From NCBI RefSeq assembly GCF_011386835.1, contig NC_088810.1, positions 2,604,001 to 2,668,000 on the forward strand: a stretch of 64,000 bases of DNA, read 5' to 3'. A program made the translations under genes and the position numbers. The notes under the pieces were generated by a model. The model saw only the letters and a list, made by a program, of their open reading frames with translations, did not search any database and was not told where the DNA came from. This document shows positions 11,547 to 42,875 of this stretch, in pieces. The first letter of the stretch is position 1, and every line of letters begins with the position of its first letter. The stretch comes from Chrysemys picta bellii. Taxonomy: Eukaryota.

Positions 11547-11901
11547 CTGGAAAACACAAAATAAACCCAACGGGACGCAGCATGAGAGATGGGATATTCC
11601 CCTGGGGCACGTGGGGAAGGGGTTAGAAATGTCCCACAGACTCCAGCCCGATGGCTCTCAGCATTTCCGTAGCGTGGATCGCAGCTTCCAAGAAAGAGGG
11701 TGTCATGGACACCCTCCCTTCCACAGGCCCCACTCCCCTTCCCATTTGACATCACCAAACCTCACCTCCCACTTCCTGGTTATCGCCTAGACCCCCCGCT
11801 CCCCTGCACAGAGCTCCACTCCCTGCCGCGTGGAGCAGTTTCTAGCAGCCCAGCTGCCCAGACCCTGGGACTTGTGCGGTGCCCTGTGAGAGGAGCCCTA
11901 C

Positions 11902-13198: not shown

Positions 13199-13552
13199 TT
13201 AGCACTATAAGTGAAATCTTCTGGGACCAGCTTCCCAGCTCACAGGTGACGTTGCAGAGGTAGGATCCCTCATCCTGGAGGCGAACGTCGCTGAGTCTCA
13301 GGGATGCATTTCCCTGGGGGAATTTCTGTGGATATAGCTGTGTTCGGCCCCTGTAAGCCTCTTCCTGTCCCTCCAGCCAGTTCATCTTCAGATAGAATCT
13401 GTGAACCAGGAGACCCTGGCCCTGGGCTCCTTCCTTTGTCCAGGTGATGCTCAGTCGATGGAAGCTTATCTTAAATTTGGACGGGAAGATGCAGGTCAGG
13501 GTGACGTCTTTCCCATACTGAGCTGTGATGGCTGTCTCCTCTCCAGCAATGC
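13199..13552 (-). CDS. IgV exon 1 (B7/butyrophilin-type V-set), unit 1
   Basis: 354 nt, phase 1-1 (CCTTTAAG|GC ... CTAA|GTACGG). Translates IAGEETAITAQYGKDVTLTC...ITW...YRGRTQL...DEGSYLC. Confidence 0.92.
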
Positions 13553-14356
13553 CTTAAAGGAAAGCGAAGATCAACATCAGAGTCTTTCATCCTCCAACCT
13601 CCACCATGACCCCCAAATCTTATTCAGAGTCACTGGTCCCCAGGAGAGAGCCCCCCAGCCTGTAAGTTGGGCCAACATACTTTGAATCCTAAGGAGGGAG
13701 CAAAGAAGTGTTAAACTGCTACCTTACTAGTTGGCCACCATCCTAGTTTTACAGCTTTCTGAAGGCCAGATCTTGTATGTCCACCAAACCTCGTCTTTTG
13801 GGGGGTGTAAAGCTAGTTAGAGGAATGCTTTTGGAACAATTTATTGGCTAATGAATAAACAGAGAAAAAATAAATGAAAAGGTGGCATGTTCCAAACTGA
13901 TTAAAGGATGTACTTTTTCGTGGAACAGTGAGCTTGTGGAACTCCCTGCCACATGATGTCATTGAGCCCAGGAGCTTGACAAGATCTAAACAGGGATTGG
14001 GTGGTTAGCTGGATAACAGGGAAAGCCAGAGTTAGAGTAGTTAATGCTAACATACATTTTGGAAGTGAGACTGAACCTCACGCTTAAACCAATCTCGAGT
14101 TATAAAAGATTAGCATGAGACCTCACATGTCGGGCAGACCATCCACAGCTATGGAGATATATATATACTGTGTATATAAGTTTTAAACAAACAGTTCAAT
14201 ACTGTACACAGCAATGAGGATTGTGAAGCTTGGTTGAGGTGGAGGAGTCAGAGGGTGGGATATTTCCCAGGGAGCCTTACTGCTAAATGATGAACTAGCA
14301 CTCGGCTGAGCCCTCAAGGGTTAACACATTGTTATTAATGTAGCCTCACACTCTAC

Positions 14357-14414
14357 AAGGCAGCACAAGAGGCAGGAGACACAAAAGACGCATGGCAGTG
14401 GCTGCAAACATTCC
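14357..14414 (-). CDS. Candidate signal-peptide exon, unit 1 (MRLLCLLPLVLP)
   Basis: Acceptor TTTCCGCAG|, Kozak-like TGCCATG at 14393, hydrophobic peptide. The only in-phase donor (CCTT|GTAGAG) is weak. Confidence 0.5.
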
Positions 14415-14538
14415 CTGCGGAAACTGAACGTGATGATGAACCCAGGTTATCCCACTGGAGCGCACCACTCCCTCCCCTTTCCAAAGTGCCGGGGTGTGTG
14501 TGTGTGTGTGTGTGTGAGCGAGACAGAGAAACAGAGAC

Positions 14539-14871
14539 NNNNNNNNNNNNNNNNNNNNNNNNNNNNNNNNNNNNNNNNNNNNNNNNNNNNNNNNNNNNNN
14601 NNNNNNNNNNNNNNNNNNNNNNNNNNNNNNNNNNNNNNNNNNNNNNNNNNNNNNNNNNNNNNNNNNNNNNNNNNNNNNNNNNNGTGTGAGTGTGTGCGTG
14701 AGACAGNNNNNNNNNNNNNNNNNNNNNNNNNNNNNNNNNNNNNNNNNNNNNNNNNNNNNNNNNNNNNNNNNNNNNNNNNNNNNNNNNNNNNNNNNNNNNN
14801 NNNNNNNNNNNNNNNNNNNNNNNNNNNNNNNNNNNNNNNNNNNNNNNNNNNNNNNNNNNNNNNNNNNNNNN
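14539..14871. other. Assembly gaps (N runs 14539-14683 and 14707-14871) within a TG/AG microsatellite tract
   Basis: Seen directly in the sequence. Confidence 0.98.
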
Positions 14872-16048
14872 TTTACGTACGCTGACCCCACTCTAAGTAC
14901 ATTGCCTTTTTAAGTAGATCAGCAAGTTGAGACAGCAGCTGCTGCCAGCATGCTCCCTCCGTCCTGAGCCCCGTCGTGCCCCCCACTGCTCCGTGTAGAT
15001 GGGGTACAGGAGTGGGGGGCAGGAGCGGGGGGAGAGGGACACCCTGACATCAGCCCTCCTCTTCCCCCCCGCCCCGCACAGCAAGCAGGAGGCTCCGGGG
15101 AGCAGCTCCAAGGCAGAGGGCAGGAGCAGCACATGGCAGTGGGGGGAGGGACACCTGAACTGCCGGCAGTCGATAGCCTGCTGGGCAGCTGCCGCACAGG
15201 GAACTCAGGGGAGCTGATAGGGGGGGCTGCTGGTCCACCCTGGCTCCAAGCCCCCCCCCCGCCCCCCCAGCTCCAGCAGGCTGCTCTTAAAGCAGGCGGC
15301 TGCCAAAGGACGTTAGAAGGGAGCACTGCACAACTTTAAACGAGCCTGTTCCCTAATTGATCAGCGACGTAACCACGAAACATCGTTAACCGGGACGCCG
15401 TTCAGTGAGGGGTTACTGTAATAACGCACAGCACTGAGCCCAATGGGGCCTTGGCCAGGACTGGGGTTCTTGTGTGTTACCGTGATACACCTAATAAACA
15501 GCAATCAGAATGGACAGCACCGAGCAAAGTGGGGGCCTGGGTTGTGACGGGGCTCCGGGGCACTGAAGTCGTTATCACCAAAGGCGAGCAGAGCTGGAAT
15601 ACTTACAGCAGAGAGTCCACAGCACAATCGAGTGAAGTGAGCAAACGAGACTGACTCTCATCATGGTGCGGAGCAGCCTGCGTCTGCAAGCGAAGGCGGG
15701 ACGGTCTCTGAAGGGCTGGCTCCTGCCCCAGGCGAGCCGCTGAACGTCAGGAATGAAGGCACCGGGCGCGATTCTCCTCTCGCTCACCCCAGTAGCGCTC
15801 AGGTGTAACGCCGGGCTGGTTCCGATCTCTCATCTCCTATGTCATTTAATAGCCAAGAAAGCAAAGCGATTGCAGACGTATTTGGCAGGGTGCTGTGGAA
15901 ATGCTTTTAACAAATGCAGACCTGGTTTCTCACTAATGCTCACACCTCTTTTGCTGGGTGTAAATTACATTCAATGCAATTCCGTAGCAGGAATCCAATT
16001 CTCTGACATCCCAGGGGAAGCCGAAATGAAGCCCCAGCCCCTCTAGAG

Positions 16049-16928: not shown

Positions 16929-16941
16929 GGAAAGTGAAAGC
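16929..16941 (-). promoter_or_regulatory. ISRE/IRF element, unit 1 promoter
   Basis: GGAAAGTGAAAGC (+) = GCTTTCACTTTCC (-), matching the GAAANNGAAA consensus. Confidence 0.7.
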
Positions 16942-17519: not shown

Positions 17520-18240
17520 GGAGTTAGTAATCCAGTACTAACGGGCGCTCTCCCCAGGCACTCAGGGCTGGCTCTGATGCCCCCGGCTGGTGCTTGGGGG
17601 TGCTGTGCTGCAGGGAGCAGGGTGGGGACTCTCCCCTGGCAGTCAGGGCTGGCCCCAATGCCCCAGTGCTGTGCTGGGGGGGCTTTGCTGCAGGGGGCGG
17701 GGTGGGATGTCTCCCCTGGCAGTCAGGGCTAGCCCCAATGCCCCTGCTGGGTGCTAGGGGGCGCTGTGCTGCAGGGAGCGGAGCAGGGGTTCTCCCAGGC
17801 AGTCAGGGCTGCCCCGATGCCCCAGGGTGGCGCTAGGGGGCGCTGCGCTGCAGGGGGCAGCGTGGGGGCTCTCCCCTGGCACTCAGGGTTGGCCCCGATA
17901 CCCCAGGCTGGCACTAGGGGGCGCTGTGCTGCAGGGGGCTGGATGGGAGCTCTCCCCTGGCACTCAGGGCTGCCCTGATGTCCCAGACTGGCACTAGGGG
18001 GCGCTGTGCCGCAGGGGGCAGCGTGAGGGCTCTCCCCTGGCACTCAGGGTTGGCCCCAATGCCCCAGGCTGGCACTAGGGGGCGCTGTGCTGCAGGGGGC
18101 GGGGTGGGGGCTCTCCCCTAGCACTCAGGGCTGGCCCCAATGCCCCAGGCTGGCACTAGGGGGCGCTGTGCTGCAGGGGGCGGGGTGGGAGCTCTCCCCT
18201 GGCAGTCAGGGCTGCCCCGATGCCCCTGCGGGGCGCTAGG
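17520..18240. repeat. G-rich minisatellite, ~81 bp unit, ~9 copies
   Basis: Period 81 seen at 17980/18061/18142; unit GGGGCGCTGTGCTGCAGGGGGCGGGGTGGGGGCTCTCCCCTGGCACTCAGGGCTGGCCCCAATGCCCCAGGCTGGCACTAG. Confidence 0.9.
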
Positions 18241-22162: not shown

Positions 22163-22857
22163 TCAGCCAGCCAAACGACTCCCCAATTCTTGCTGTAATA
22201 TTTCCTCTAGGAGAGGAAAGTCGTGCCGGCCATATTCAAAGTTAGACAGGAGAAAGACCTGTGGGGAAGTCACCCCTTCTCTCTGCAAGTCTTTCACGCA
22301 AGTGTCTCTGATTCTCTGCAGAATTTGCTCTTCATTATAGGTAGAAGGCCGATTCCTCCGGGCAGCAAGCAAGTTCCTGTCGACCTTGGAGCGCACAAAA
22401 TAAACCTTCTTCCCTGCTCGCTGGATCTTCCGGGCCAGGCCAGTGTGGGTGGCTGTGAAGTGACGGGAGGAGAAGATGAGGAATACATCGTATTGGCTCA
22501 AACTGAAGAGATCGTGGTCCATGTCTGATTGACGTGTCATCAACCCGAACCCCGGCAGGTCCCATATGGTAACATTGGGTTGTTTGGGAAGCTGATAAGA
22601 AGTTGGTACCATTGTCGTTTCCACCACCCCGGTTTTAGCAGCACCTTCCTCTTCATCACCCAGGCCTCTAATGACATTGACAAAGGATGATTTCCCAGCA
22701 CCCGTCTGCCCCAGGAGAGCGACGCTTCGCATGGTGTTTTGTGATGACCCCCCATCCTCCTGCCATGCAGAATCTGCTTCAGAAAGGTCACTTGTGTCAG
22801 AAGTAAATGTGTAGCTCCAGGAATCGGCACTATCCCCGTCAGAGTCCAGCCTCTGGC
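22163..22857 (-). CDS. Terminal coding exon: acidic linker plus IRG G domain, C-terminal helical domain missing; unit 2
   Basis: Acceptor TTTTCCTTTTCCAAG|GC (phase 1); open for 41 codons before ATG 22732. G1 GQTGAGKS, switch I KTGVVETTM, G3 WDLPG, G4 SKVD. Stops after QELGSRLAG. Confidence 0.88.
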
Positions 22858-22955
22858 CTTGGAAAAGGAAAAGAAACGTTTCAATTACAGTTGGCTTTAA
22901 AAGTCCCTGTTAAACATGAAACTTTCAACTCTTATTTCAGCCTTCAGTGACATTC

Positions 22956-23516
22956 TGTAGAGGGCTGGCTCGGCTGTTCCCCACGCATGGCTGGGACGCG
23001 GCTGTGGGCTGCCAATTCATAATTCCCCGGGGGGCATTGCCAGCCTCTGTCATTTACAACATCCAGTACATGCCCATATCTGTACCTGCCCCTACCTGAA
23101 GCTGTTGGCTTGTTCTCCAGAATCGTGGTGTGACGGGGTAGATTAGGCCCTGAGGCCCCCTGCTGGAGGGACCCCTGATGGGTCCTGCCACACCCTGCCC
23201 CAGAAAAAAGAGCAGTAGAGAGGTCCTCCAAGCAGGCTAAGCAGGCTAGAGTGGCTGCAGGGGAAGCAGCCAATCAGGGGCCAGGAGGGCCATATAAAAG
23301 GAGCTGCAGAACAGCGCAGCAGGCAGGTGCTGTGTGGAGCTCAAGGAGTGAAGACTGGGTGACTGGCTGGCTGGCAGAGTAGCAATTCATAGTGAAGACT
23401 GTGTGTGACTTGGCTGGAGGGCTGAGTCACCGAAGAGCCACCAAAAACAAAGAAGAGAGTGAAGGCACATGCACTCAGCCAGGGGGCGCTCACGAGGGGT
23501 GAGTCATCCTGTTACA
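22956..23516 (+). mobile_element. Solo LTR with CCAAT and TATA boxes
   Basis: TGTAG...GTTACA ends; CCAAT at 23270, TATAAAA at 23293, and a GGGTGAGT donor near the 3' end. Confidence 0.6.
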
Positions 23517-24976
23517 CGCGGCTTTCCTTTTCCTTTTTTAAAGTAATTCTCTAGCTGTTACACTTGTGAAAACAACATCAAAATAATGAGCCGAGGGTAA
23601 CGGATGGAGAGATGAGTCTACAGACAGCCTGGGACAACAGATGTCAGAGGAGGGACTTCCCACGTGTAACTGATGGAGCAACACCTGCCTGAGTCTGCAG
23701 AGAGCCTGAGACCATTGCTGGCCTAGCAGTGAGCTGCAGGTCAGGATCGAGGAGCACTGGAAGAGCTGTGGAGGGAGCCCAGAGCTGGGGCAGTAGCGGG
23801 GCTGCAGGTCAGGACTGAGCCTCATTGGCAGAGCCGTGAGGGTGGAGAGCTAAGGGCTGGGGTGGCAGGGGGGCTGCAGGTCAGGACTGAGCTGTGTCTC
23901 TGCCTTTTCTAGTGTCTCCTTCCCTTGCCTTCCGCACCCACAAGTTTGATTTACACATGGAAGTGACATTTTACCATAGATCATACCCTATCCACAGCCC
24001 AGTGTGGCTGGGAGCCAGGAGACAGCATGTGTGTGTGGGGGACACAGAGGCATTTCCCTTCCCAGCCACTAACAGACCCACTTGATGCTTTTCTCTCAGC
24101 TCCAGGCTCTGTGGGGAAAGCCGTTTTCAGCATTCTGAGCTCCCCTGGGGCTGCCTGCTTTGCTGAGGCATTCGCTCCCAGCTGCAATGCCGTGGTACCC
24201 TGGGGGGACAACACATTTACTAATAGATCCAGGACCAGAACCTGGTCTCCGGGTGTCTCCTGCCTGTTCAGCTGGATGGGATGGTCGGGAATCGGGGCCT
24301 GTAGCAGAGCTGGTCTCTGAGCGCAGCCATCCTGGAGTACGCTCCTACTTGGCCACCCCGCCCGATTAGCTGGAAGGCTCAACAGACCAGCTCTGCTTAA
24401 AGATGTGACTAAGCAATTACATGCAGAATGAAGCCACTTTCCGCTTGCTGGGAGCCGGCTTGGTGGCTTCATGGCACCTGCTTGTTCCTAGCCCTGCTCC
24501 AGCCTGGCTCCTCTCCAGGGAACCTGCCTCGACCCGCAGCCCCAGGCCCTGATTTCTGACGGGGAGTAACACACAAGCACACCAGCCCCAGAACTTGTAT
24601 TAGAGTCCAAACATGGATCGGGGCCCCATGTAGCACTGGGCACTGCCACCCCCTGACCGAAATCAGGGCTGCATATCAAGATCCGGGGTCCCGGGGCGCT
24701 GGGTGCTGCACAAACCCAGTGAGACATTCCCCTGCCCCTAAGAGCGTCTGATCTATTTAACATCTTCATTCTGATCTGGAAGAGGGGAGCAATTTGTTAG
24801 TTACATGCCTAGATACGAAATTGGGAAGAAGGCAAACACGTGTGAGAAATAATCCACAGAGAGCTAGAGAGTTAAGAAATAATGAGAGGTCTATGAAATA
24901 AACATGCCTAACTCATTCTTTTGAACTGGTTTTCCTTCTTCTGTGAAAATAGCGCTGCTTACAAGTGGGACTTTAC

Positions 24977-25097
24977 CTGTTTTGCTAGGCTTCTGGGCAA
25001 TATTTCTGGGATCCTTTTCCTTTGCAGGAGATTTTCCACGGGAGAATTTTGGCTGTTCAGGCTTCTCCCATGCGTGTCTTTCATCCCAGGCTGGCGT
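24977..25097 (-). CDS. Cytoplasmic linker exon, unit 2 (TPAWDERHAWEKPEQPKFSRGKSPAKEKDPRNIAQKPSKT)
   Basis: 121 nt, acceptor GAATCTTTTCTAG|, donor CAG|GTAAAG. Phase 0 in and phase 1 out, matching both flanking exons, with no stop. Confidence 0.78.
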
Positions 25098-26329
25098 CTA
25101 GAAAAGATTCACATTGGAGTGAATAGAAAGGGTGAGTTTACACGGCAATCGGCACGACTCTGATTGCACTCGCTTGTTAAAAATACTGGCGTGGCTGCAG
25201 GCGGCGGCTCAGGCTAGCTGCCCCAGGACGTGTCTAGGATCTCGGACGGGACTGTACAGGGGACCACTGCTTGGGTCTCCGTGGCCCCACTGCTAGGGGC
25301 TAGCTGGATCGGAGCTGGCATGTGCACCTCTGCCCACGCCAGCCCCCGCCCATGGTCTCTTCACCTCAGCTTCACTCCTCTGACTCCATTCCCCTCAGCA
25401 CCCCTATCCCCCCTTGTCCCTTCCTTGGTGCTAACGAAACACACCTCGTTTGCAGCCATCCCATCGCTCGTGCGTTCTCCCCCTTCCCAACCATGTCTGA
25501 CTGGCCTATTTAAACAATAGTCTTTAATTGTTTCCTTGCCCTCCCCCATCCATCTGGCTGTCTCCAGCTGGTGTCTCTTGTACATAGACTAGAAGCTCTT
25601 CGCAGCAGGGACTCTCTTTGTTCTGTGTTTGTGCAGCACCTAGCGCGCTGGGGTTCAGGGTCAGGATGGAGTGCCTGGGCACTACCATGATACGCCTAAT
25701 AAAGGGCACTAATAATTTACAGCGCCCAGCACAGTGGGGCCCTGCACCAGGATATGGGCATGTGGGTGCTACCGTAATGCACCTAATTAAGGGCAGTAAT
25801 AATGTACAGTACCTAGCACAGTGGGGTCCCAGGCCGGGTTAGGGGTGCTACTGTAATGCACCAAATAAACAATAGGTTTTTATTATTAGGAGTTAGACCT
25901 GATGACCTTTGCAGTCCCTTTTAACCCTATGGGTCTACGATTCCATTATTATTATTATTATTTATTATTTATTATCACAACATTTCAATTTTCTGCTGCA
26001 ATTTTCTAAACAAAATAAAATTCAATTCAAACTGAATATTTTCATTCTCAAAATGTTGATTTGTTTCCCTTTTTTTTAATTTTCAGGGAGTGGGTTTTCC
26101 CCCCTTTTTTGGCGCCCCCCATTTTTGGCATTGGATAAAGGCAAGGAAAGGTTTTTCAGCTAGAAGCCCGGTCGGCCCAGTGGCTAATCTGCTACTGATC
26201 TTGACAGATCAAAAGGAATTGATCACAGAACTAAAAATGCGTGGCTCTTTTAGATGCAAGTGGTCATGACTTGATCACATTTGTCGTGTGCAATGAGAAT
26301 AAAGTCCCAACCAGTAATATAGATACAGG

Positions 26330-27325
26330 GTGTTTTAATTATGTATCAGCTGGCAGAAAGAATGTAAAGAGAAAACGGTGAATGATAATTGGGAATGGTT
26401 TAAGAACATTTTACTAGATGCCCAGAAAACCACAATCCCAGATGAGAAAGAGTTTAAAAAACCAGCCTACTTAGAGAGGAAATGAAAACCACTTCAAACA
26501 ATAATATATAACAATTGGAAGAAACGGGAAGTTGATAGCAATGAATATAAATTAGATGTACATCAGAAGCAGGAAGCCTGCTAAACAACCAGTGGGGCCC
26601 CTGGACGATCGAGATACAAAAGGAGCGCTTAAAGACGATAAAGTCATTGCAGAGAAACTAAATGGATTCTTTGCTTCAGTCTTCACGTCTGAGGATGTTA
26701 GGGAGATTCCCAAACCTGTCGTCCTTTGTAGGTTGAAGTGTCTTTAGAAGAGGCTTTAGAATTGATACACTTAACATTAACAAGTCACCGGGACCAGATG
26801 GCATTCACCCAAGAGTTCTGAAAGAACTCAAATGTGAAATTGCAGGACTATTAACTATGGTTTGTAACCTGTTCTTCAAATCAGCTTCTGTACCCAATGA
26901 CTGGAAGATAGCTAATGTAACGTCAATATTTAAAAAGGACTCCAGAGGTGATCCTGGTAATTACAGACCGGTAAGTCTAACGTCAGTACCGGCCAAATTA
27001 GTTGAAACAACAGTCAACCTGGGGAACTCCTTGCCTGAGGAGGTTGTGAAGGCTAGGAATATAGCAGGGTTTAAAAGAGAACTAGATAAATTCATGGAGA
27101 TTAAGTCCATTAATGGCTACTAGCCAGGCTGGGTAAGGAATGGTGTCCCTAGCCTCTGTTTGTCAGAGGGTGGATATGGATGGCAGGAGAGAGATCACTT
27201 GATCATTACCTGTTAGGTTCACTCCCTCTGGAGCACTTGGCATTGGCCACTGTTGGCAAACAGGATACTGGGCTGGATGGACCTTCAGTCTGACCCAATA
27301 TGGCCATTCTTATGTTCTTATGTTA
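26330..27325 (+). mobile_element. CR1 LINE fragment (RT remnant plus 3' UTR, internally deleted)
   Basis: ORF 26857-27123 contains DWKIANVTSIFKK..GDPGNYRPVSLTSVP, the CR1 RT N-terminal motif, followed by a CR1 3' UTR. Confidence 0.9.
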
Positions 27326-27987
27326 AGCTAGGCATTGTAGAAAATTGATGAGGAAAGCAAATGGACACAAAGAGAAATATATGGCCTCCAGAATTAGAAG
27401 ATCACTTACATGGGGAATAAATACCTACATGGGAAATAGAAAATTGATAACAGACGGCTCTTCAGTCGAGCAGAAAAAGGAAGCAAGACAAACTCAGACT
27501 GGAAATAAGGTTTAACCGTGAGAGTAATTAATCATTGGAACAAATTACCAGGGGTTGTGATGAATTCTCCATCACTGGCAATTTTAAAATCAAGACTGGA
27601 TGTTTTTCTAAAGGATCTGATTGGGGCAGTTCTCTGGTCTGCGTTATCCAGGAGGTCAGACCAGATGATCAGAGTGGTCTCTTCTGGCTGGAATCTATGC
27701 ATTTCTGAGCAATTATAAACTCCTCACAGTCCATCCAGGGGCCGGGTAACTGCACCCTGACATTCGGGGTCAGAAAACAATCAACCTTAAAAATTCTGGT
27801 GGAGAAGGGGAGGCAGGGAATTTTTTTTCTTCGTGTCTGGAGATCGCTGAGTGCAAATGTAATTAAACAGAGGGATTTCAAACAGGCAAAAGAAAAATGC
27901 TCAAAGCAGCGTAAACCCTCCCCACATCTGTAATGAAGATGCCTCCCCACAGACGCGCCAAGGAGAGAAAAATGTTTTGAAACTCAC

Positions 27988-28226
27988 CTGCCGGGACTCT
28001 AGAGTCTGTTTGGTATCATCCACTCTTAAGTCCCACAAGAAATAGGCTTCCGGCTGCGCTCTTCCCTCCTCATAGTCAGCCTCCAATCCAAAGGCGTGTT
28101 TGGATGGCCTCAGTTTCCATCGGCCGGGAAGACGACGCATTTTAATGATGATAAGCATTACCAACAGGGAAAGAGGAAGAAGTAGAAGAGGAAGAGGTGC
28201 CCAATAGAACCAGACACACCTGGCAC
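27988..28226 (-). CDS. Transmembrane/juxtamembrane exon, unit 2
   Basis: Acceptor TTTCTTACAG|GT (phase 1); encodes WFYWAPLPLLLLPLSLLVMLIIIKMRR; consensus donor CAG|GTGAGT (phase 0). Confidence 0.85.
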
Positions 28227-28975
28227 CTGTAAGAAATGTGGGAGGGGAAGAAAAATCCACAAAACCCAGAATGCTTCTGTGAGCGCAGCAGGGTCCCAGG
28301 AAACCCCCGCTCTCCCCCCCAAGAGGTGCTGGGAATTGCAGACACCTTTCCCACTGCCACGAGCCCAGGGGATCTCAAATATTGTCAGAGCTGCACAGAG
28401 AGATCATACCTCTCCTCCCATTTGCCTGTAGGGTTCCCTCCTTTCTAATTGCTGGTAACCAGACCCGCGAGGAGACCACGCCCCCTTCTTCATCTCTTCC
28501 CAAGGCCCCACCCCATTGCTTGCTCCTCTCCCCACATCTCTCACTGGATCGTCTCATGGGACCTGCCAGCAGGTAGGAGGTGGCCTTGGTCGAGCAGGGG
28601 CTGGTGCGGGGTAATGACCCAGTGCCTCCGTCCACCCCGTGGTAACCGGACTTTTGGTTTGGGTGCCATTGAGGGTTGCCAGGTCCCAGAAAATCACCCA
28701 GACAGAGAAGCCAAAAACAAGACTGCCTGGATAAAAACAAGACAGTTGGCAACCCTATTTGTCTGTGCTTGGCCCCTCTCACTCCTTCCCCTTTGCTACC
28801 ACTGAGATTCACCAGCGATCACCTGGGCTCCCATCTACCATCTCGCTGAGCCATCCAGCTCTGCTCCCCAGTGGGTTACGGTGATGTGAGAACCCACCGC
28901 CGCGTGGAGCTGTTCCTAGCGGCCCAGCTGCCCGGACCCTGGGACTCGTGCGGTGCCCTGTGAGAGGAGCCCTAC

Positions 28976-29326
28976 CCTTCTCCACGGTCACTCTCATCCG
29001 CACGGAAAATGTGCCCAGTTGTGGCTTGACGTGGCAGGTGTAGACCCCGTCATCCGCCAGCTGGACGTTCTTGAGTCTCAGGGACGCAATTCCCTCGTGG
29101 AATCTCTCCGGATACAGCTGGGTCCGGCCCCGGTAAGCCTTATTCTGTCTCAGCCTCTGGTCCCTCCCCTTATAGTACGTGTGAACCAGGAGATCCCGTC
29201 CCTCCGCTGTTTCCTTCTTCCAGGTGATGTTCAACAGCTGCAGGTTTCGCTCAGGTTCGAAGGAGCAGCTGAGAGTGATGTCCTCCCCTTCCTGAACTAC
29301 AATGGGCGACTCTCGTTGTCTTGCCC
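28976..29326 (-). CDS. IgV exon 2, unit 2
   Basis: 351 nt, phase 1-1 (CTCTTTAAG|GG ... AAGG|GTAGGG); close paralog of 11902-12252. Confidence 0.92.
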
Positions 29327-29838
29327 CTTAAAGAGAAAAATCAATATTTTTTGTTGAGTTTTTCAAACATCAAGCAGTGGCCCATGCACTCATGACATGC
29401 ATACGCTGTAGTCTAAAAAGTACCCACAACACAGCCTGCACCCGTTTTCCATTTCACCCCAAAATCTGTAACTGCAAAACCTGAGTGGATTAGCAGAAGG
29501 GGAGATGGTGGTTAATACTGGAGCTAGTGATGGAGGGTGTCAGAGAAGCTTTGGTATCAAAGCCATGGATGCACCAAGACGGCATGAGGGGATTTCCAAA
29601 GGGATTCAGGTGCCTACAGATGCAGAGAGGTGCTTTTGAGAATCCCTCTACGTGCCTAACTCCCTCGACTTCTATGGGAATTAAGCAACAAAAAATGGAA
29701 AAAAAAAATTGGTGTGTGTGTGTGACAATTTGCATTTAGTTGAAAAGCTGTTTTCCTCCCAACAAATGTTTGAACGGCATCTTTTCGACCAGCTGTAGCC
29801 TCAGAGGCCAGCAAAGCCCATTGTAGGAGGTGTCATAC

Positions 29839-30183
29839 TCAGCACTGTCAGCGATGTCTCCTCAGACCGCGGGCCCAGCTCAGAGTTGACGAAGCAGCTG
29901 TAAGACCCCTCGTCCTCAATGTGAACATCCCTCAGTCTCAGGGACGCGTCCCCTTTGGCGAATCCTTCTGGGTCCAGCTGCGTCCGCCCCCTGTAAGCCT
30001 CAGATTGTTTCTCCATTCCCAAAGAGTAGCTGTGGACCAGCAGATCTGGTCCATCGGCTCTTGGCTTCTTCCAGGTGACGTTCACTTGTTGATTTGCTGC
30101 CAAGCCGAGTGTGGAAAAGGTGCAGCTCAGGGTGACGTCCTCGCCGCACTGAGCTGTGATGGATAACTGTGACATGATCACCC
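29839..30183 (-). CDS. IgV exon 1, unit 2
   Basis: 345 nt, phase 1-1 (CCTTTCAG|GG ... CTGA|GTATGA); ITAQCGEDVTLSC...VTW...YRGRTQL...DEGSYSC. Confidence 0.92.
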
Positions 30184-31516
30184 CTGAAAGGAAAGCGAGG
30201 GTCAGTATTAGAGTGTTAAAATGACAAGCTATCTCTTTAACAGGTAAGAGGTTTCCAGGTCCTAATCAAAAGCTGGGGGTCTGCAGGGAAGTGTGCGATC
30301 ATCAGTCAGTCTGCAAAGAGCCAGCCTAGAGTAAGGTGGGTTGAGTTACGCCTCTCCGCCTTAGGAGCAGCCTGCTTTGTCTCTCTCTGGTTTTGGTTCT
30401 TCTGTGTCAGGGTTCTGGAGCCTAAGAAATAAGTTTGTGTTATGTCACAATCTTCCCGTAAGTGGATTTGATGTTTGTTTCTAACTTCTCTATTTGTATG
30501 CTGTCAACAGAACATCTTTCACTTTCAGAACCAGTCTCTCTCCGCCCGTACATTTTTCGGCCCTAATTGACACAGAAGCTGCTTTGTGCCCCTCTGACTG
30601 CATGAAGGGATCTGAAAATGGGTGAAAATTACAGGGCCAGTGTGGGACTCGGGGGAACCAAGAACCGGAAGCGTAGATATTAAAGCCAGAATGGACCATT
30701 ATGACCATCTGCACAACATAGGCCAGAGAAACTCATTTCCTGGCCTGCTTTTGCTAGGTTAAACAAGCCAAGCTTTTCCAGTCTCCTCTCATAAGATCAG
30801 TTCTCCATTCCTCTGATCATCCTAGCAGCCCTTCTCTGCACCTGGCCCAGGCCGGATTCATCTTCCCTGAGCAGAATTGGACACAGTTTTCCAGATGAGG
30901 TCTCCCCAGTGCCTCGTACGCTGACATGAATGTTTCTCCCAGAGCGTGACAAGGGCAGCGTGTTACAGGGACCAACATCATTTGGAAGGGGGGAGTACAG
31001 GAGCAGGGGAGAAAAACAGGCACAGCTCCAGGCCAGAGGTAAAATGTCTCCAAATCCAGACGGGACAAACGGCAAAACATTTTGTTAATGCTAGTGTGGC
31101 CATATTTTCCCAAAGGGAAAACGGGACACTGCATGGGGCTGGCCCATGGCCCCCCGCCGCCCACCCACGTGGGGCCAGCCTCAGGCCTCCCTCAAACCCC
31201 TGCACGCGGGGCTGGCCCAGAACCCCCTGTCACCTGCCCACGTGGGGCTGGGCTGGCTGGGCCCCAGCCGCTCTCCTGAGCCCTCCCTCCCATGCAGGGC
31301 TGGCGTTGCCACTTGTCTCCCCTCCCCACAGGTTCCTCCATGCCCTGCTAGGGTTCGCGCCCCACTTTTTTGATACAACTGTGCATTTGTCCAGTTTGCT
31401 CTTGCCAGCTGAGCCAGGACAGGACTTAAAAATGGGACTCCCTCGGCCAAAGCGGGACGTGTGGTCACCCTGGTTAATGCAGAGTTAAGGATGCCTGGTG
31501 ATAGCTCCTGCCTTAC

Positions 31517-31618
31517 CAGAATGTCGAGTTCAACAAAACTCAGGCTTCTGAAAACCAGGAAATACTGAGTTAAGGTCAACACCCATTTAACCTTAACTCT
31601 GGCCCCTGGAGTTGACAT
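31517..31618 (-). CDS. Candidate leader exon, unit 2 (MSTPGARVKVKWVLTLTQYFLVFRSLSFVELDIL)
   Basis: TGCCATG start and strong donor CTG|GTAAGG, but phase 0. It needs a 0-to-1 micro-exon; the candidate 30666-30708 has only a weak donor. Confidence 0.45.
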
Positions 31619-32476
31619 GGCAAGAGAATGATCGGTGTGCACACTAGTTGCCTTCAAAGGGTGGGGTGTAGCTGTATTGAACGGTGGAGGGATTAGTTGG
31701 AGCAGTGTGGGAGAGCTGTGAGTGTGACGTGCGTGGGATCTGGGACTGAGCCCCTCCACGGGTGTGATCAAAGGACCGAGGCGCACGTGTCCAAGCCTGC
31801 GTCGTTCCAATCAGAACTGTACCGAACTGGGGACTTACTGTAGAGGGTCCACAGAGCGAGCGAGTGAAGTGACAATGCGGGGCCGGTTCCCATTACGCTG
31901 CAGGCTTGTCGGACATCTGCAAGAGAAGGAGCAACATGCTCTGAAAGGCATTCGGGGCAGGATCCGGCCAGTTTGACACTGACAAACCGATTCTCAGCTC
32001 GGCCCAGCAGGGCCCTAGTGAAATGTCTCTACAAACCTAGAGAAACTAATAGAGACTGAAGCCAGGTCTACGCTACGAACGTACAGCGATATAATCACCT
32101 CGCTCAGGGGGGTGAAACATCCACCCCCCTGAGCCACGCAATTACACCGACTGAACCCCTGGTGTAGACAGCGCTAGGCCGGCTTCTCCCGTTGCCGTAG
32201 CTACTGCCTCCTGGGGTCTTACAGCGAATGTGAATTACATTTACTCCCATTTATACGACCAAACCGGTGTGAAGTGCCCTTTGAGAATCCAGCACTACCA
32301 TTCTGATCTGTTGACGTTTTTACACTTCGTTTGCACCAGGGTAAATGAGGAGCACGGGTGCAAGGAGAATCCGGATTTGGATTTTGCTACATGGACTTTG
32401 CTATCGAGTCTACACTTGCGAGGGTGTAATTCTGAGTGTGGGCCATGTTTAAACAGCCACGCAAAGGTGTAAGTAC

Positions 32477-32784
32477 CAGAGGTCCCCAAACTGTGGGGCA
32501 CGGAGGAATCTTTGGGGGGGCATGGTGGGCCAGGGCCAGCCCCCACAGGAGCATGGAGGAAGCAACACCCAGCCCCGCTCTGCCCCCATCTCAGCTTCAG
32601 GCCCACCCCCTGCCTCAGCCCCTGGCTGCGGCCCTGCTCCCAGCACCAGCCTCGGCCCCCTCACCCCTTCCACATCCACCCCCAACCCCGGAAGTGTGGC
32701 CATGTTCCCAGCCCTGGCTTGGGGCGAGGGGCGGCAGACAGGGGTAAGTGGGGGATCTGACCCTGAAAAGTTTGGGGACCACTG
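32477..32784. mobile_element. hAT-type MITE
   Basis: Termini CAGAGGTCCCCAAACT...AGTTTGGGGACCACTG. Confidence 0.7.
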
Positions 32785-33102
32785 GTTTAGATACATACTG
32801 GGGATTTGGGGCTTCTTCCCCCTCCCTTCCACCGAGCCACAAAAGTCTTCCCCCATCTCCACATGTTGCTAGGCATCATCATCCCCCAAAGGTCGGGGTC
32901 CCCCTGACTAAATCCACAGGGCACGTGAAGCTGTTACAGCCGTGACCCCGTTAGAGCAGCAGAGATCGGTTCTGTGCAGAGCCATTAACGTGCAGTTCAG
33001 TGTTTAGCAGCCATGTTCGAGGTGCCTTAGCAGGCCTTAGAAACATATTTTGGAGAAAATCCCAGCAACAAAACAGCCCCACCTGGGAGGGGAATCTCTT
33101 AC

Positions 33103-33215
33103 CTTCCACCCCAAAGGCATCAAACCCTCCGATCTTCTCGGGGTGCTGGGAGAAATGGAATAATCCCTGTTTGTTCCACCGGCACCCGCCCCATCTCTCC
33201 CCCGGCAAGGGCAGC
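33103..33215 (-). other. Putative non-coding exon 1, unit 2
   Basis: Donor GAAG|GTAAGAGATTCCC 125 nt downstream of the ISRE, with a GC box GGGGCGGG in between; the 5' end is approximate. Confidence 0.6.
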
Positions 33216-33227
33216 CTCTGAGGAACA

Positions 33228-33241
33228 GGGAAAGTGAAAGT
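33228..33241 (-). promoter_or_regulatory. ISRE/IRF element, unit 2 promoter
   Basis: GGGAAAGTGAAAGT (+) = ACTTTCACTTTCCC (-). Confidence 0.72.
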
Positions 33242-33719: not shown

Positions 33720-34330
33720 GTAGGGGACGCTCTCCCCTTGCAGTCAGTGCAATGAACCAGGGCAACACTAGAGGCGCTGTGCTGTGGGGGGCGCTCTCCT
33801 GTGGCAGGCAGGGCTGGTCCTAATGCCCCAGGGTTTTGGGGAGGGGGGTGCTCTCCCCTTGCAGTCAGTGCAATGAACCAGGGTGGTGCTAGGGGGCGCT
33901 GTGCTGCAGGGGAGTGGGGTGGGGGGCGCTTTCCCGTGGCAGGCAGGGCTGGCCCTAATGCCCCAGAAAGGCACTAGGGGGCGCTGTGCTGCAGGGCGTG
34001 GGATGGGGGCTTTCCCTGACTGTCAGGACTGGCCCCAATGCCCCAGGGCGGTGCTAGGAGGCGCTATGCTGCAGGGGAGTGGGGTGGGGGTCGCTATCCC
34101 CTTGCACTCAGTGCAATGCCCCAGGGTGGTGCTAGGGGGCGCTGTGCTGCAGGGGGCAGGGTGGGGGGCTCTCCCCTAGCTGTCAGGACAGGCCCCAATG
34201 CCCCGGGGTGGGGCTAGGGGGCGCTGTGCTGCAGGGGGCAGGGTGGGGGCTCTCCTCTGGCAGTCAGGACTGGCCCCAATGACCCAGGGAGGCGTGGGGA
34301 GGGGGCTGTGCTGCAGGGGGGCGAGGGTGG
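33720..34330. repeat. G-rich ~81 bp minisatellite, same family as 17520-18240
   Basis: Repeated GGGGGCGCTGTGCTGCAGGGG...CTCTCCCCT...GGCCCCAATGCCCCAGGG. Confidence 0.85.
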
Positions 34331-35329: not shown

Positions 35330-36610
35330 TCCACTGTCTACCTGCTCTCTCTGAGAAGTCTCCATTGTATCCAGTTCCTGGGAAAGTCCTTGGGAGTGTG
35401 AATTCCCTTTAATGGCCCATCAGCGCATCTGGCTCCTCCATTGCTGCACCTGAAAGGCTGGTTGTGGGTGTTCCCAATAAGGCAGCCCTCCCCAGAAACC
35501 TTCTGGAAAGGATTGCAGAGAACCTCCATGAAAGTTTCCTAGAGCTCTCCATGGAGGATTCCTGGGCCATCCCTGTGCACATAAACAGCCTTTTTGGGGG
35601 AGAACCCTCTGTGAAGCTAGGGCGGCCACCGGGACTCAGATACCCACTGCACCTCACTTTTCTTTCATATTAAACAAAATATAAGAGCACGTAACCCCTA
35701 CAGTTTCATTGGAATTGCATCCTCACCAGAGGTGCCTTCCCCGGCATCACACCTGACCACGATGCTGTTCTGGGAATGGCTGGACTGCTCCGGGGTTAAA
35801 AATAGCTTCTGGCTCTCAGGAAGAATGGATCCTCTGCTCGCCTGCCTTCCATTGTCCTCCTGCTGGTCTTTGTCCAAGTGTCCTCCTCGTTGTTGCCTGA
35901 GGTGGTCTGGGACTCCCGGGAGGTATCCGTGCTGCATTTTGGGGTAGTGGTGGGGTCGCCACTGAGAATCGCATGTAGCTCATTGTAGAACCAGAACGGC
36001 TGTTCACCTCCCTTGTCTTCTGGTACCTCTGCCTGCTGAAGTGCTTTGGTTTTCACGCAGCACTGCAGTGTGTCCTGGGTGTAGCCTGTCTCCCCCATGC
36101 CCCGCGTGATCTTTGCGTAGATGTCGACGTTTCTTCGGCTGGATGGGAGCTCTGCCTGCAGAGACTCTACTCCCCACGCAGCAATAAGATCCATCACCTG
36201 CTGTGTACTCCAGGCTGGGGCGCGTTTGGAGCGTTGAGTCACCATGCTCGGCGAGCTCGCCACGCTGATCACACAGGAAATGGGAATTCAAACGTTCCCA
36301 GGGCTTTAACCGGGAAGCGGCTGTTGCCCGTGTACTTGGCTGCCGTGCAGCGGAGCTGAAAACCATCTCCGCAGCGGTCACAGCGGAACATTGTGGGACA
36401 CCGCCAGGAGGCCAATTCAGTCGACGTACACAACACTGGGTCTACACTGCCTGTCTGTCGACCCATCAACGTCGAATTCATTACGTAATTAAGTCAACGC
36501 TACAGGTGGGTTAGGTTGGCCGAAGGGACCTCGTACTGTAGATGCAGACATTTTTAGGTTGACGTAAGGCAGCTTCCTTTGACCTAACTTTGCTGTGTAG
36601 ACCAGGCCTT
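35330..36610 (-). mobile_element. Harbinger/PIF-like element remnant with frameshifted Myb/SANT-like ORF (35698-36272)
   Basis: KRAPAWSTQQVMDLIAAWG...RRNVDIYAKI...QCCVKTKAL resembles a Myb/SANT-like domain; GTCTACAC/GTGTAGAC motifs are nearby. Confidence 0.7.
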
Positions 36611-38743: not shown

Positions 38744-38970
38744 ATCTGAGGGGTCGCCGTGTTAGTCTGGATCTGTAAAAAGCGACAAAGAGTTCTGTGG
38801 CACCTTATAGACTCACAGATGTATTGGAACATAAGCTTTCGTGGGTGAATATCCACTTCGTCAGACGCATGTCATGGAAATTTCCAGAGACAGGTATAAA
38901 TAGGCAGGCAAGAATCAGTCTGGAGATAACGAGGTTAGTTCAATCAGGGAGGGTGAGGCCCTCTTCTAGC
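38744..38970 (-). mobile_element. Penelope-like element terminal fragment
   Basis: Contains the hammerhead core followed by TGAGTCTATAAGGTGCCACAG...CAGACTAACACGGC; nested in another degenerate hammerhead-bearing repeat. Confidence 0.7.
38829..38868 (-). ncRNA. Minimal type I hammerhead ribozyme motif
   Basis: GCGT-CTGACGA-A-GTGG(ATATTCAC)CCAC-GAAA-GCT-T-ATGT: both core boxes, 4-bp stem II, palindromic AGCT stem III, and stem I with G:U pairs. Confidence 0.65.
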
Positions 38971-39229
38971 ACTTGAGGTGTGAACACCAAGGGAGGAGAA
39001 AAGTTTGGAAGGTTGCAAGGTTGTGTTTCTTCCACCCAGAAGCTGGTCCCATAAGGATATTCCCTCACCCACAGGGGCGGCGAGATGTATGGGCCCATGG
39101 TGCCCCTACTCCACCAATATGAGAGCACGGGGGCCCGGCTCCACCAAAGTTCAGGGCTGGGTCTCTCCCCCAACCCCATCTGCCAGCCCCGCACACCTCC
39201 CCCTCCTACCTCATTTTCACTGGCATTCA

Positions 39230-40335
39230 CTATGGTAGACGTCCAATCACCACCAACCTTCTTGGTGAAAATCAAAACAAAGACGTCATTAAGCACCTCT
39301 GCCATTTCTACATTTTGTGTTGTCTTTCCCCCCTCGTTGAGTAACGGCCCTACTCTGTCCTTGGTCTTCCTCTTGCTTCTAATGTACTTGTAGAATGTTT
39401 TCTTGTTACCCTTTATGTCTCTAGCTAGTTTGATCTCGTTTTGTGCCTTGGCCTTTCTAATTTTGTCCCTACAGACTTGTGTTAGTTGTTTATATTCATC
39501 CTTTGTAATTTGACTGAGTTTCCACTTTTTGTAGGGCTCTTTTTTGAGTTTTAGATCATCCAAGATCTCCTGGTAAAGCCAGGCTGGTCTCTTGCCAGAC
39601 TTCCTATCTTTCCTATGCAGTGGGATAGTTTGATCTTGTGCCCTTAATAATTACTTTTTGAAAAACTGCCAACTGTCTTCTATTGTTTTTCCCCTTAGAC
39701 TTGCTCCCCATGGGATCTTACCTTCCAACTCCCTGAATTTGCTAAAGTCTGCCGCCTTGAAATCCATTGTCTTTATTGTGCTGTTCTCCCTCTTACCATT
39801 CCTTAGAATCATGAACTCTATCATTTCATGATCACTTTCCCACAAGCTGCCTTCCACTTTCAAATTCTCAACCAGTTCCTCCCTATTTGGCAAAACCAAA
39901 TCTAGAACAGCCTCTCCCCTGGTAGCTTTCTCGACCTTCTGAAATAAAAACTTGTCTCCAATACATTCCAAGAACTTGTGAGATAATCTGTGCCCTGCTG
40001 TCTTATTTTCCCAACAGATGCCTCGGGAGTTGAAGTCCACCATCACCACCAAGTCCTGTGTTTTGGATGTTTTGTTAGTTGTTTAAAAAAAGCCTCATCC
40101 ACCTCTTCTTCCTGGTTAGGTGGTCTGTAGTAGACCCCTACCATGGCATCACCTTTGGTTTTTACCCCTTTTATCCTTACCCAGAAACTTTCAACAAGTC
40201 TGTCTTCTATTTCCATGTCAACCTCAGTCCGAGTGTGTACATTTTTAATATATAAGGCAACACCTCCTCCCTTTTCCCCCGTTTACCCTTCCTGAGCAAG
40301 CTGTACCCTTCTATATCAATATTCCAGGCATGAGT
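39230..40335 (-). mobile_element. CR1 LINE ORF2 fragment (endonuclease and linker remnants)
   Basis: ORFs 39651-40052 ([12 protein letters not shown]...LDLVL...SDHEMIEF) and 38940-39563 ([17 protein letters not shown]). Confidence 0.88.
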
Positions 40336-41540: not shown

Positions 41541-42875
41541 ATGGATATGGATCTAGTCTCAGTGCTCAGGAAGGGTATGGAGTCTGTCTCAGCACGCATG
41601 AAGGGTATGGAGTCTGTCTCAGCACTCATGAAGGGTATGGAGTCCATCTCAGTGCTCATGAAAGCTCTGCATGTAAGGTTGGACCCAAAGGAATTCTTCA
41701 ATGGCTCCATAAAGGTGTTTGAGGAGTTCATGGATATTTTCAAAGACAAAGAACAGGCAGAAGTGGCTTCTATAGCGCAGGCGGAGCTGGATTTGTTCAA
41801 ATCCACCATGCTCAACATCGCAGTCACGGGGGAGACGGGTGCCGGGAAATCGTCCTTCATCAACGCCCTCCGGGGACTGACCGCTGAGGATGACGGGGCT
41901 GCCCCAACGGGGGTGACAGAAATGACGACGGAGCCGACTGTTTATCCCTATCCAAACCACCCCAACGTGAGGCTGTGGGACCTGCCCGGCATTGGTGCCC
42001 CAGATTTCCAGCCAACCACGTACCTGCAACAGGTGAACTTCGAATGCTATGACTTCTTCGTGATCATCGCTTCGGAGCGCTTCAAATGCAACCATATGGC
42101 CCTGGCCCAGGAGATCGAGAGAATGGGGAAGAGGTTCTATTTTGTGCTCTCCAAGGTGGATGAAGACTTGTGCAACGAAGAAAGGGATCACCCTAGAACA
42201 TTCAGTCAGGAGAGCGTCCTGGAGAGACTCAGGATGGACTGCAGGAAACACCTGCAAAAGGCAGGGATGAGCAACCCAGAGATTTTCCTTCTCTCCAGCT
42301 GTGAATTCACCAAGTATGATGCTCCTGGCCTGGTCAAGACTTTGAAGGATGATCTCCCAGGGCCGAAGAGACTTGCCTTTCTACTCAGTCTGCCACACCT
42401 GTCTGCCGAAATCATAGAGGAGAAGAAAGCTGCCCTGAAGAAGCTGATATGGTTAATCTCTCTCGCGTCGGCTTTAGTTAATATCATTCCTATCCCGCGG
42501 CTCTCTGTTGCTTGTGATATTAGCATCCTGCTAGGATTCATGATTGCCTTCTACAAGTACTTTGGCCTAGATGACGGCTCCTTGGCTAATCTGGCCAGGC
42601 AGAGTGGGAAACCAATAGCGGAGCTGAAGGCTGTTATCCTATCTCCTGAGGCAAAAGAAATAAACAGAGATTTTGTAATCAAACTGCTTCTAAAGGAGGA
42701 GAAGGTTTTGCCTAGATTAATTGCATATGTACCAGTGCTTGGTCCCATGTTAACTGTGGGAATCTCTTTTTCAACCACCTACTTCATGCTGTTGAGATTT
42801 CTCAGTGAAGTGGCTGAAGATGCCGAAAGGGTTCGGAAGACCGCTTTGAAGGAAGACAAGAAAAAGCGTAAATGA
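41541..42875 (+). CDS. IRGC-like: Immunity-related GTPase, GKS class, copy A (444 aa), apparently intact
   Basis: Single coding exon; G1 GETGAGKS, switch I PTGVTEMTT, G3 WDLPG, G4 SKVD; four N-terminal 10-aa repeats; C-terminal KEDKKKRK. Confidence 0.95.
   Translation: MDMDLVSVLRKGMESVSARMKGMESVSALMKGMESISVLMKALHVRLDPKEFFNGSIKVFEEFMDIFKDKEQAEVASIAQAELDLFKSTMLNIAVTGETGAGKSSFINALRGLTAEDDGAAPTGVTEMTTEPTVYPYPNHPNVRLWDLPGIGAPDFQPTTYLQQVNFECYDFFVIIASERFKCNHMALAQEIERMGKRFYFVLSKVDEDLCNEERDHPRTFSQESVLERLRMDCRKHLQKAGMSNPEIFLLSSCEFTKYDAPGLVKTLKDDLPGPKRLAFLLSLPHLSAEIIEEKKAALKKLIWLISLASALVNIIPIPRLSVACDISILLGFMIAFYKYFGLDDGSLANLARQSGKPIAELKAVILSPEAKEINRDFVIKLLLKEEKVLPRLIAYVPVLGPMLTVGISFSTTYFMLLRFLSEVAEDAERVRKTALKEDKKKRK

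Follow-up and report, generated by a model that had tools for sequence, protein, structure and literature searches.

Can the G domain of an immunity-related GTPase (IRG) be part of a membrane receptor, and does the turtle locus described here encode such a protein in one intact gene? IRGs are textbook cytosolic, interferon-induced GTPases that find pathogen vacuoles by the absence of host 'self' markers, and their choice of target membrane is still debated. The stretch analysed, referred to as the window, comprises 64,000 nucleotides of Chrysemys picta bellii (NCBI RefSeq assembly GCF_011386835.1, contig NC_088810.1, positions 2,604,001 to 2,668,000, forward strand), and all coordinates below are window positions. 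The element in question, unit 2, has two immunoglobulin (Ig) V-set domains (IgV1 and IgV2) and a transmembrane (TM) segment, followed by an IRG G domain. Sequence evidence strongly supports window 22163-31893, minus strand, as one intact gene encoding a 601-residue type I membrane protein. Taken together, an intact fusion gene with a tethered IRG G domain and a mechanism driven by clustering is, in our judgement, quite probably the best explanation of this locus.

The gene model was built on five minus-strand segments, which the first-pass annotation of the window had proposed to chain without a stop over 1751 nt. All boundaries, phases, and the frame were confirmed (Table 1). Each segment is bounded by AG and GT, and the five exons joined make a single frame of 1751 nt ending in the stop codon TGA at 22165-22163. 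The joining of the leader, which that annotation had left aside, could be added: the leader exon is located at 31893-31839 and leaves in phase 1. The leader-IgV1 joint reads …LWTLY-R-VIMSQ…, and 16-17 of the 18 leader residues are identical to those of the Gopherus, Platysternon, and Carettochelys leaders. The complete coding sequence hence has 1806 nt in six coding exons and encodes 601 residues, with its start codon in the leader exon, 9 kb upstream of the IRG exon. The IRG exon was found to be open for 41 acidic/Ser-rich codons before the ATG at 22732, as had been claimed; a run of 41 open codons is unremarkable by itself. Direct splicing of the TM exon to the IRG exon, in the manner of the neighboring unit 1, was considered and rejected for unit 2. 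The unit 2 acceptor reads CAAG/G and that of unit 1 CAG/G, and this one-base shift breaks the frame. The linker exon is needed in unit 2 because such direct splicing is out of frame.

The linker exon converts phase 0 to phase 1, as the first-pass annotation had emphasized. The arithmetic is correct, but as evidence on its own the conversion does not rise above chance. The 5.1-kb intron in which the linker lies contains 276 open AG..GT segments with a length of 1 mod 3, and seven of them have splice sites equalling those of the linker. In 78% of 200 Markov shuffles of this intron, at least one comparable frame-fixing segment occurs. As the phase fit within a single sequence is insignificant, the case rests on comparison with other genomes. 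There the linker does stand above chance, because this exon, matching in splice-site sequences and in phase, is annotated as coding in other turtles, namely in Gopherus, Carettochelys, Mauremys, Caretta, and a paralogous gene of Pelodiscus. Its acceptor motif tgtgaatcttttctag is common to the relatives, even Pelodiscus. The linker has 121 nt in the window and Gopherus, 127 nt in Carettochelys, and 106 nt in Pelodiscus, which is 1 mod 3 throughout. A linker lacking conservation or bearing stops, envisaged earlier as a sign against the fusion, was not borne out: the linker is coding and 1 mod 3 in all species compared. The Caretta caretta model (P0302) likewise splices the linker to the IRG exon, with a 5' end that differs.

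We then scored the unit 2 G domain against 1.8 billion representative proteins. The closest relative is a 238-residue Mauremys reevesii protein, which is 86% identical and has the same …GSRLAG end, and next comes a set of turtle proteins bearing the G domain at their C-terminus. Three proteins are collinear with the 601-residue model from the first to the last residue: P0281 of Gopherus flavomarginatus (596 residues), P0278 of Platysternon megacephalum (625 residues), and P0277 of Carettochelys insculpta (606 residues). The proposed in-frame fusion of IgV-IgV-TM to an IRG domain is thus matched by end-to-end alignment in three other turtles. Exon models were recovered from the fetched Gopherus, Carettochelys, and Pelodiscus loci, and they reproduce the annotated proteins exactly. 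The window, Gopherus, Carettochelys, and the paralogous Pelodiscus gene share six coding exons with phases 1,1,1,0,1. From leader to IRG exon, the lengths are 55/345/351/239/121/695 nt in the window, 55/345/351/224/121/695 nt in Gopherus, 55/345/351/257/127/686 nt in Carettochelys, and 58/354/339/176/106/674 nt in Pelodiscus. Between any two of the window, Gopherus, and Carettochelys, the TM and linker exons differ in length only by multiples of 3. Per-exon amino acid identity between the window and Gopherus, in the same order, is.94/.91/.87/.80/.72/.89.

The first-pass annotation had called for a search for V-set, TM, and IIGP architectures in reptile proteomes. Several annotation pipelines predict proteins that combine V-set and IIGP domains, in at least 12 turtle species. 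With the paralogous Pelodiscus protein (P0266) as query, proteins of this architecture were found in Pelodiscus, Carettochelys, Lepidochelys, Mauremys, Platysternon, Chrysemys, Gopherus, Pangshura, Emys, and Chelonia, that is, exclusively in turtles. A query with the IRG part of unit 1 (9464-8244) likewise found orthologues annotated with both domains in several turtles. In a G-domain tree, unit 2 groups with Gopherus, Platysternon, Mauremys, and Carettochelys in clade B (100/99 support). Clade B is sister to a second fusion clade with the G domain only, clade A, which holds Pelodiscus, Chelonia, Lepidochelys, and Mauremys mutica (100/99). The paralogous clade sharing the unit 2 plan includes LOC142819709 of Pelodiscus sinensis (P0266) and others. 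Naming of these proteins is inconsistent: the Platysternon orthologue P0278 is called 'putative urea transporter', and elsewhere the names 'interferon-inducible GTPase 5-like' and 'uncharacterized protein' are used.

Exon conservation and the ratio of nonsynonymous to synonymous substitution rates (dN/dS) in other turtles had also been put forward as a check. The six exons and their phases are kept, and the coding parts differ in constraint. Against Gopherus and Carettochelys, respectively, dN/dS of the window gene is 0.30 and 0.30 for IgV1, 0.25 and 0.50 for IgV2 (range 0.25-0.54), 0.32 and 0.22 for the TM exon, 1.08 and 0.91 for the linker (range 0.5-1.1), 0.71 and 0.84 for the acidic extension, and 0.24 and 0.28 for the G domain (range 0.24-0.35). 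The truncated G domain is not decaying, because its dN/dS lies in the purifying range. The tether between the TM segment and the G domain drifts in sequence like disordered linkers, yet its frame is kept in the genes compared. In a neutral simulation of the 82 linker and acidic codons, the frame stayed open in 26%, 7%, and 3% of cases at 13%, 27%, and 50% divergence, respectively. The acidic/Ser-rich codons of the IRG exon are open in every species compared.

Translation starts were inspected as well. The reading frame of the IRG exon lacks an ATG anywhere from the upstream stop to the P-loop in Carettochelys and Pelodiscus, and Caretta likewise has no Met ahead of the G domain. Therefore, the G domain of these three turtles is translatable only within the spliced gene. 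In the window, the sole ATG ahead of the P-loop sits 6 codons before it. Downstream of 22163, tblastn detected no remnant of a C-terminal helical domain, frameshifted remnants included. The notion of a recently broken full-length IRG was dropped, as the same stop is found in distant turtles.

The protein is composed of an ectodomain, a single membrane span, a long tether, and a G domain. As the first-pass annotation had it, the Ig domains are B7/butyrophilin-like. The best solved relative of both Ig exons is the IgV domain of CD276/B7-H3 (E 1e-36 for IgV2 and 1e-32 for IgV1), followed by VTCN1, MOG, and butyrophilins. The canonical Cys pair is present in each IgV domain, as is a conserved N-x-T sequon. 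Hydropathy gives a single hydrophobic segment at residues ~254-284, after which come basic residues. The AlphaFold model of the Gopherus orthologue has a signal helix, two Ig sandwiches, a TM helix at 256-277, a disordered region at 281-407 (predicted local distance difference test score, pLDDT, below 30), and a compact G domain at 410-590. The disordered tether of ~125 residues is first basic and then acidic/Ser-rich. The fold matches of the modelled ectodomain are the V-V receptors JAML and CD226, and also B7-H3.

The Pfam IIGP match of the unit 2 IRG exon (E 2e-66) covers only profile positions 31-218 of 375. The G1 motif GQTGAGKSS, the G3 motif DLPG, and the G4 motif SKVD are present, which makes it an IIGP-type G domain. 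It aligns without gaps to Irga6 67-248 and also corresponds to Irgb10 69-251, and the modelled G domain superposes on those of Irga6, Irgb6, and Irgb10 at ~3.0 Å over 185 columns. The G domains of Irga6 form a parallel dimer, in which G103 contacts the opposing ribose, and E106 is the catalytic residue (PMC4774019). The window protein and Gopherus retain the equivalents of Irga6 K82, S83, G103, E106, T108, D126, G129, K184, and D186. A Glu replaces the D126 equivalent in Carettochelys, and an Arg replaces the K184 equivalent in Platysternon. All three clade B orthologues share the G103 and E106 equivalents with the window protein.

This anatomy leads to a proposed mechanism. The two B7-H3-like IgV domains would face the cell exterior or an organelle lumen, with the G domain in the cytosol on its flexible tether. 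The TM anchor would stand in for the lipid- or helix-based membrane targeting of canonical IRGs. The tethered G domain may still be able to form the GTP-dependent, parallel head-to-head G-G dimer of Irga6 and the dynamin superfamily, because the GTP-binding and catalytic residues are kept. Engagement or clustering of the IgV domains at the cell surface, at a phagosome derived from the plasma membrane, or at a pathogen vacuole would bring the G domains together. Clustering may also gather the canonical cytosolic IRGs encoded by the three + strand genes in the window (Table 1). In the gathered G domains, GTP hydrolysis would be switched on, and IRG assembly on that membrane would be seeded or regulated.

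The same gene could instead serve inhibition. Sequence cannot tell activation from inhibition, and a G domain acting as a membrane-resident guard or decoy rather than as an activator is the main mechanistic rival, though on balance we consider it unlikely. Mouse IRGM (GMS) proteins hold GKS IRGs inactive on self membranes, and the tandem IRG Irgb2-b1 has been proposed to soak up effectors that target IRG switch I. By analogy, the unit 2 G domain may keep cytosolic GKS IRGs in an inactive state on self membranes, or it may act as a sink for pathogen effectors aimed at IRG switch I. The presence of a G domain only, lacking the effector helical domains, the predicted permanent membrane anchoring, the conserved switch I including its Thr residues, and the canonical IRG genes in the same cluster all fit such a role. 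However, the P-loop is GKS rather than GMS, and a guard or decoy has no obvious need for two IgV ectodomains under purifying selection.

Several points weigh against an intact fusion gene with a clustering-driven mechanism. We infer receptor function and mechanism from the anatomy of the protein. The Irga6 G-interface side chain S132 and the side chains R159, K161, K162, and D164 of the trans-stabilizing loop are not conserved in unit 2. The support for the fusion gene is comparative and draws on the gene models of others; these agree across pipelines, but they are not fully independent, and homology borrowing is possible. A search of the protein collection for a transcript contig spanning the junction (query P0281:251-450) returned only Caretta P0302 and Mauremys P0122 and no Logan RNA contigs. 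The linker and the acidic segment have a dN/dS of about 0.5-1.1. Finally, RefSeq splits the syntenic locus of Mauremys reevesii (86-93% DNA identity) into a 378-residue Ig gene and a 238-residue IRG. The records of this split orthologue are L001 1-10717 and P0122.

The Mauremys split is exactly what would be expected of two genes, an Ig-Ig-TM gene ending in a mini-exon and a truncated IRG gene or relic, in which case the fusions in databases would be read-through artefacts of prediction. The 378-residue coding sequence comprises leader, IgV1, IgV2, TM exon, the same linker, and then a 23-nt terminal exon, which lies ~200 nt past the linker and reads …DQDEDVK before its stop. The window, Gopherus (immediate stop), and Mauremys have retained this mini-exon and its stop, and it was not found in the Carettochelys or Pelodiscus loci. 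The ease with which a frame-fixing linker arises by chance and the linker dN/dS near 1 likewise favor two genes. On the other side, the linker and the IRG exon fit in phase throughout clades B and A, with all indels being multiples of 3, and the G domain is under purifying selection. A start codon for a stand-alone G domain is lacking in Carettochelys, Pelodiscus, and Caretta. The window offers only the ATG next to the P-loop, and the 238-residue Mauremys model starts at an ATG within the polypyrimidine tract of the IRG-exon acceptor, which looks like a prediction artefact. A scan of the unit 2 intron between the mini-exon stop and the IRG exon found no canonical poly(A) signal (AATAAA or ATTAAA). 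Moreover, unit 1 and two further clades share the Ig-TM-IRG order with a different junction. We therefore regard two genes as improbable. In our reading, the linker donor has two phase-1 acceptors, which would give a short Ig-only isoform and the long fusion, so that the 23-nt terminal exon probably also yields an Ig-Ig-TM isoform of the same gene.

Unit 2 is very improbable as a decaying, truncated duplicate of unit 1 with no working GTPase left: its IRG part does end after the G domain with no C-terminal helical domain downstream, and the unit-1-type TM-to-IRG splice is out of frame in it, but the IRG part is cut short at the same point (…HDFPLLEE…) in Gopherus, Platysternon, Carettochelys, Mauremys, and Caretta as well as in the listed members of clade A, the G domain dN/dS is 0.24-0.35, all nucleotide-binding motifs are intact, and unit 2 sits in an old clade (100/99) apart from unit 1.

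For the fusion gene, the upstream region offers a clue to its control. Mouse IRG genes typically have promoters with interferon-stimulated response elements (ISRE) or gamma-interferon-activated sequences (GAS) on 5' untranslated exons, followed by one long coding exon (Bekpen 2005). An ISRE-like motif lies upstream of unit 2 (Table 1) and reads GGGAAAGTGAAAGT in context. Its class has 8 matches in the window versus 1.17 expected. Gopherus (at -1363) and Carettochelys (at -1875) have the same motif with its flanks TTTACTTTCACTTTCCCTG within an alignable block, and these flanks contain no repeat common to the other matches of the window. GAS elements were not found in the 3 kb upstream of unit 2. 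Probably, the promoter of a non-coding first exon lies at this motif, near 33.2 kb, and its conservation would be in keeping with interferon control of unit 2. Exact copies of GAAAGTGAAAG with unrelated flanks occur at 16930-16940, ~1.27 kb upstream of the unit 1 start codon, at 30516-30526 in the first coding intron of unit 2, and at 52905-52915 between the + strand IRG genes.

Unit 1 (window 8241-15664, minus strand) is a second intact Ig-Ig-TM-IRG gene in tandem with unit 2 and encodes 752 residues. It has the same strand and the same order of leader, IgV, IgV, TM, and IRG. Unlike unit 2, it has retained the C-terminal helical domain (IIGP 30-374), and it does without a linker exon; its TM-to-IRG splice is direct, in phase 0-0, and reads …HSSP/GQTAKD…. 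The TM and linker exons of unit 2 have no blastn match in unit 1, which has its own TM exon. Orthologues of unit 1 with ~750 residues are found in Chrysemys (LOC101936008), Emys, Mauremys, Pangshura, and Carettochelys. The first coding intron of unit 1 contains N runs at 14539-14683 and 14707-14871 beside CA/TG-rich sequence. A tandem repeat with a period of ~81 nt lies at ~17600-18200 upstream of unit 1, and a related copy lies at ~33889-33996 upstream of unit 2; the repeat was recognized from a ladder-like series of matches that overlap one another, to Mauremys L001 14796-15011.

The IgV2 exons of the two units (11902-12233 versus 28976-29326) share 82.5% DNA identity, whereas their G domains share ~44% protein identity. 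This gap may reflect gene conversion at the level of exons, or the Ig part may have been recruited separately. In the G-domain tree, unit 1 and a fourth fusion clade are separate from unit 2. A single origin of all Ig-fused G domains is absent from the free tree and is not rejected by the approximately unbiased (AU) test (p 0.135). The side-necked turtle Emydura has a unit-1-type fusion, so the family is older than the split of the two living turtle suborders.

The G domain alone also occurs in another setting. A cluster of proteins of Mauremys mutica and M. reevesii (P0172 and relatives, 'verrucotoxin subunit beta-like') carries a G-only IRG module (IIGP 3-219) at the C-terminus, preceded by SNTX MACPF-like, stonustoxin helical, thioredoxin-like, and two FN3 domains. 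Stonustoxins and butyrophilins normally have PRY/SPRY-B30.2 at this position. The G-only IRG module may thus be a portable cassette in turtles. A wider proposal, which we regard as possible but tentative, is that turtles have 'receptor IRGs': IgV domains of type I receptors recognize a ligand outside the cell or in the lumen of a phagosome or pathogen vacuole, the G domains dimerize in parallel and seed or gate neighboring cytosolic IRGs, and the G-only module is portable, replacing B30.2 as in the stonustoxin-like proteins of Mauremys.

The remaining features of the window lie around the three canonical single-exon IRG genes on the + strand. These share 86-89% mutual identity, and their N-termini have varying numbers of short 'KGMESVS'-like repeats. 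Two near-identical open reading frames on the minus strand (35796-36272 and 55685-56260) have the same ~70 first residues, suggesting a segmental duplication of ~20 kb in the region of the + strand IRG genes. Open reading frames at 38940-40052 (minus strand) are, at a guess, retroelement-derived.

Table 1. Features of unit 2 and of neighboring genes in the window.
Feature	Position	Strand	Details
ISRE-like motif GAAAGTGAAAG	33230..33240	.	~1.35 kb upstream of unit 2 start codon
Leader (signal-peptide) exon, coding part	31839..31893	-	ATG at 31893, 18 codons + 1 nt, donor TACA/GTAAGT, phase 1
IgV1 exon	29839..30183	-	345 nt, phase 1-1, Pfam V-set E 3e-15
IgV2 exon	28976..29326	-	351 nt, phase 1-1, Pfam V-set E 1e-17
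Transmembrane exon	27988..28226	-	239 nt, phase 1-0; single hydrophobic helix, basic stop-transfer stretch, tail start
Linker exon	24977..25097	-	121 nt, phase 0-1; Lys/Pro/Glu-rich disordered segment
Alternative terminal mini-exon	24753..24775	-	23 nt, …DQNEDVK then stop, phase-1 acceptor
IRG exon, first part	22733..22857	-	phase-1 acceptor ccttttccaag/GCC; 41 acidic/Ser-rich codons
IRG G domain only	22163..22732	-	189 codons + stop; GKS P-loop, switch I GAAKTGVVETT, DLPG, SKVD
First canonical poly(A) signal AATAAA	21822..21827	-	336 nt past IRG stop codon
Unit 1 exons	15664-15607, 13552-13199, 12252-11902, 11546-11263, 9452-8241	-	
Canonical single-exon IRG genes	41541-42875, 48581-49834, 62176-63474	+	444, 417, 432 residues

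The first-pass annotation knew of no characterized example of such a protein. The literature we searched agrees with this, but predicted orthologues were already public. In the literature on IRGs searched in combination with turtle, reptile, Ig, V-set, and transmembrane, we found no description of an IRG bearing an Ig or TM domain, and the founding survey of vertebrate IRGs makes no mention of TM, Ig, or reptiles (Bekpen 2005). The architecture is already public as predicted RefSeq/GenBank proteins and is unstudied as a protein design. Unit 2 combines known domain families and does not represent a discovery of new sequence; its design would nevertheless surprise IRG specialists. An IRG G domain hard-wired to a membrane and to an Ig ectodomain amounts to a natural experiment on IRG membrane choice, in a fusion lineage that is under purifying selection and spans both turtle suborders and several clades. 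As a minimal tethered G domain, unit 2 could show whether G-G dimerization suffices to nucleate or regulate IRG coats, and its B7-H3-like ectodomain points to a ligand or counter-receptor. If the proposed mechanism is true, receptor IRGs couple trans-membrane recognition to a dynamin-like resistance GTPase, a principle undescribed for vertebrate immune receptors.

Closest to unit 2 are its own clade B orthologues, LOC127038016 of Gopherus, LOC142003777 of Carettochelys, and the Platysternon protein, which have the same collinear domains and the same truncated G domain (71-92% G-domain identity). Structurally, these records show no difference from unit 2; they are computer-predicted and unnamed, with neither experiments nor literature attached. 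Other membrane-held G domains are those of mouse IRGM regulators and of membrane-anchored dynamin- and septin-superfamily GTPases (atlastin, mitofusin, GIMAPs); none of these proteins is known to have the topology of a type I receptor or an Ig ectodomain outside the cell or in a lumen. Unit 2 could nonetheless resemble atlastin, mitofusin, GIMAPs, and mouse IRGM in combining a membrane-held G domain with nucleotide-dependent parallel G-G dimerization (PMC4774019). With Irga6 (IIGP1), Irgb6, and Irgb10, it shares the GKS P-loop, the switch I G103 and E106, DLPG, (S/T)KVD, the location in an IRG cluster, and, in its putative promoter, an ISRE-like element. Different from these three, it is without the N-terminal and C-terminal helical domains. 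Canonical IRGs have one long coding exon, whereas unit 2 has six. Unlike the cytosolic IRGs recruited to vacuoles, it is a predicted integral membrane protein with a signal peptide, two Ig domains, and a TM helix. In this respect it is like CD276, VTCN1, and butyrophilins such as BTN3A1 (IgV-IgC-TM-B30.2), which are type I membrane proteins with a B7-type IgV domain, and, as in butyrophilins, its Ig ectodomain is combined with a folded domain on the cytosolic side that belongs to an innate immunity family. It departs from B7 and butyrophilin proteins in two ways. Its ectodomain is V-V and not V-C, as both domains score best as V-set, and in place of a short tail or a B30.2/PRY-SPRY domain (a Pfam search of the tail gave no SPRY match) it has a tail of ~315 residues that ends in an IIGP G domain.

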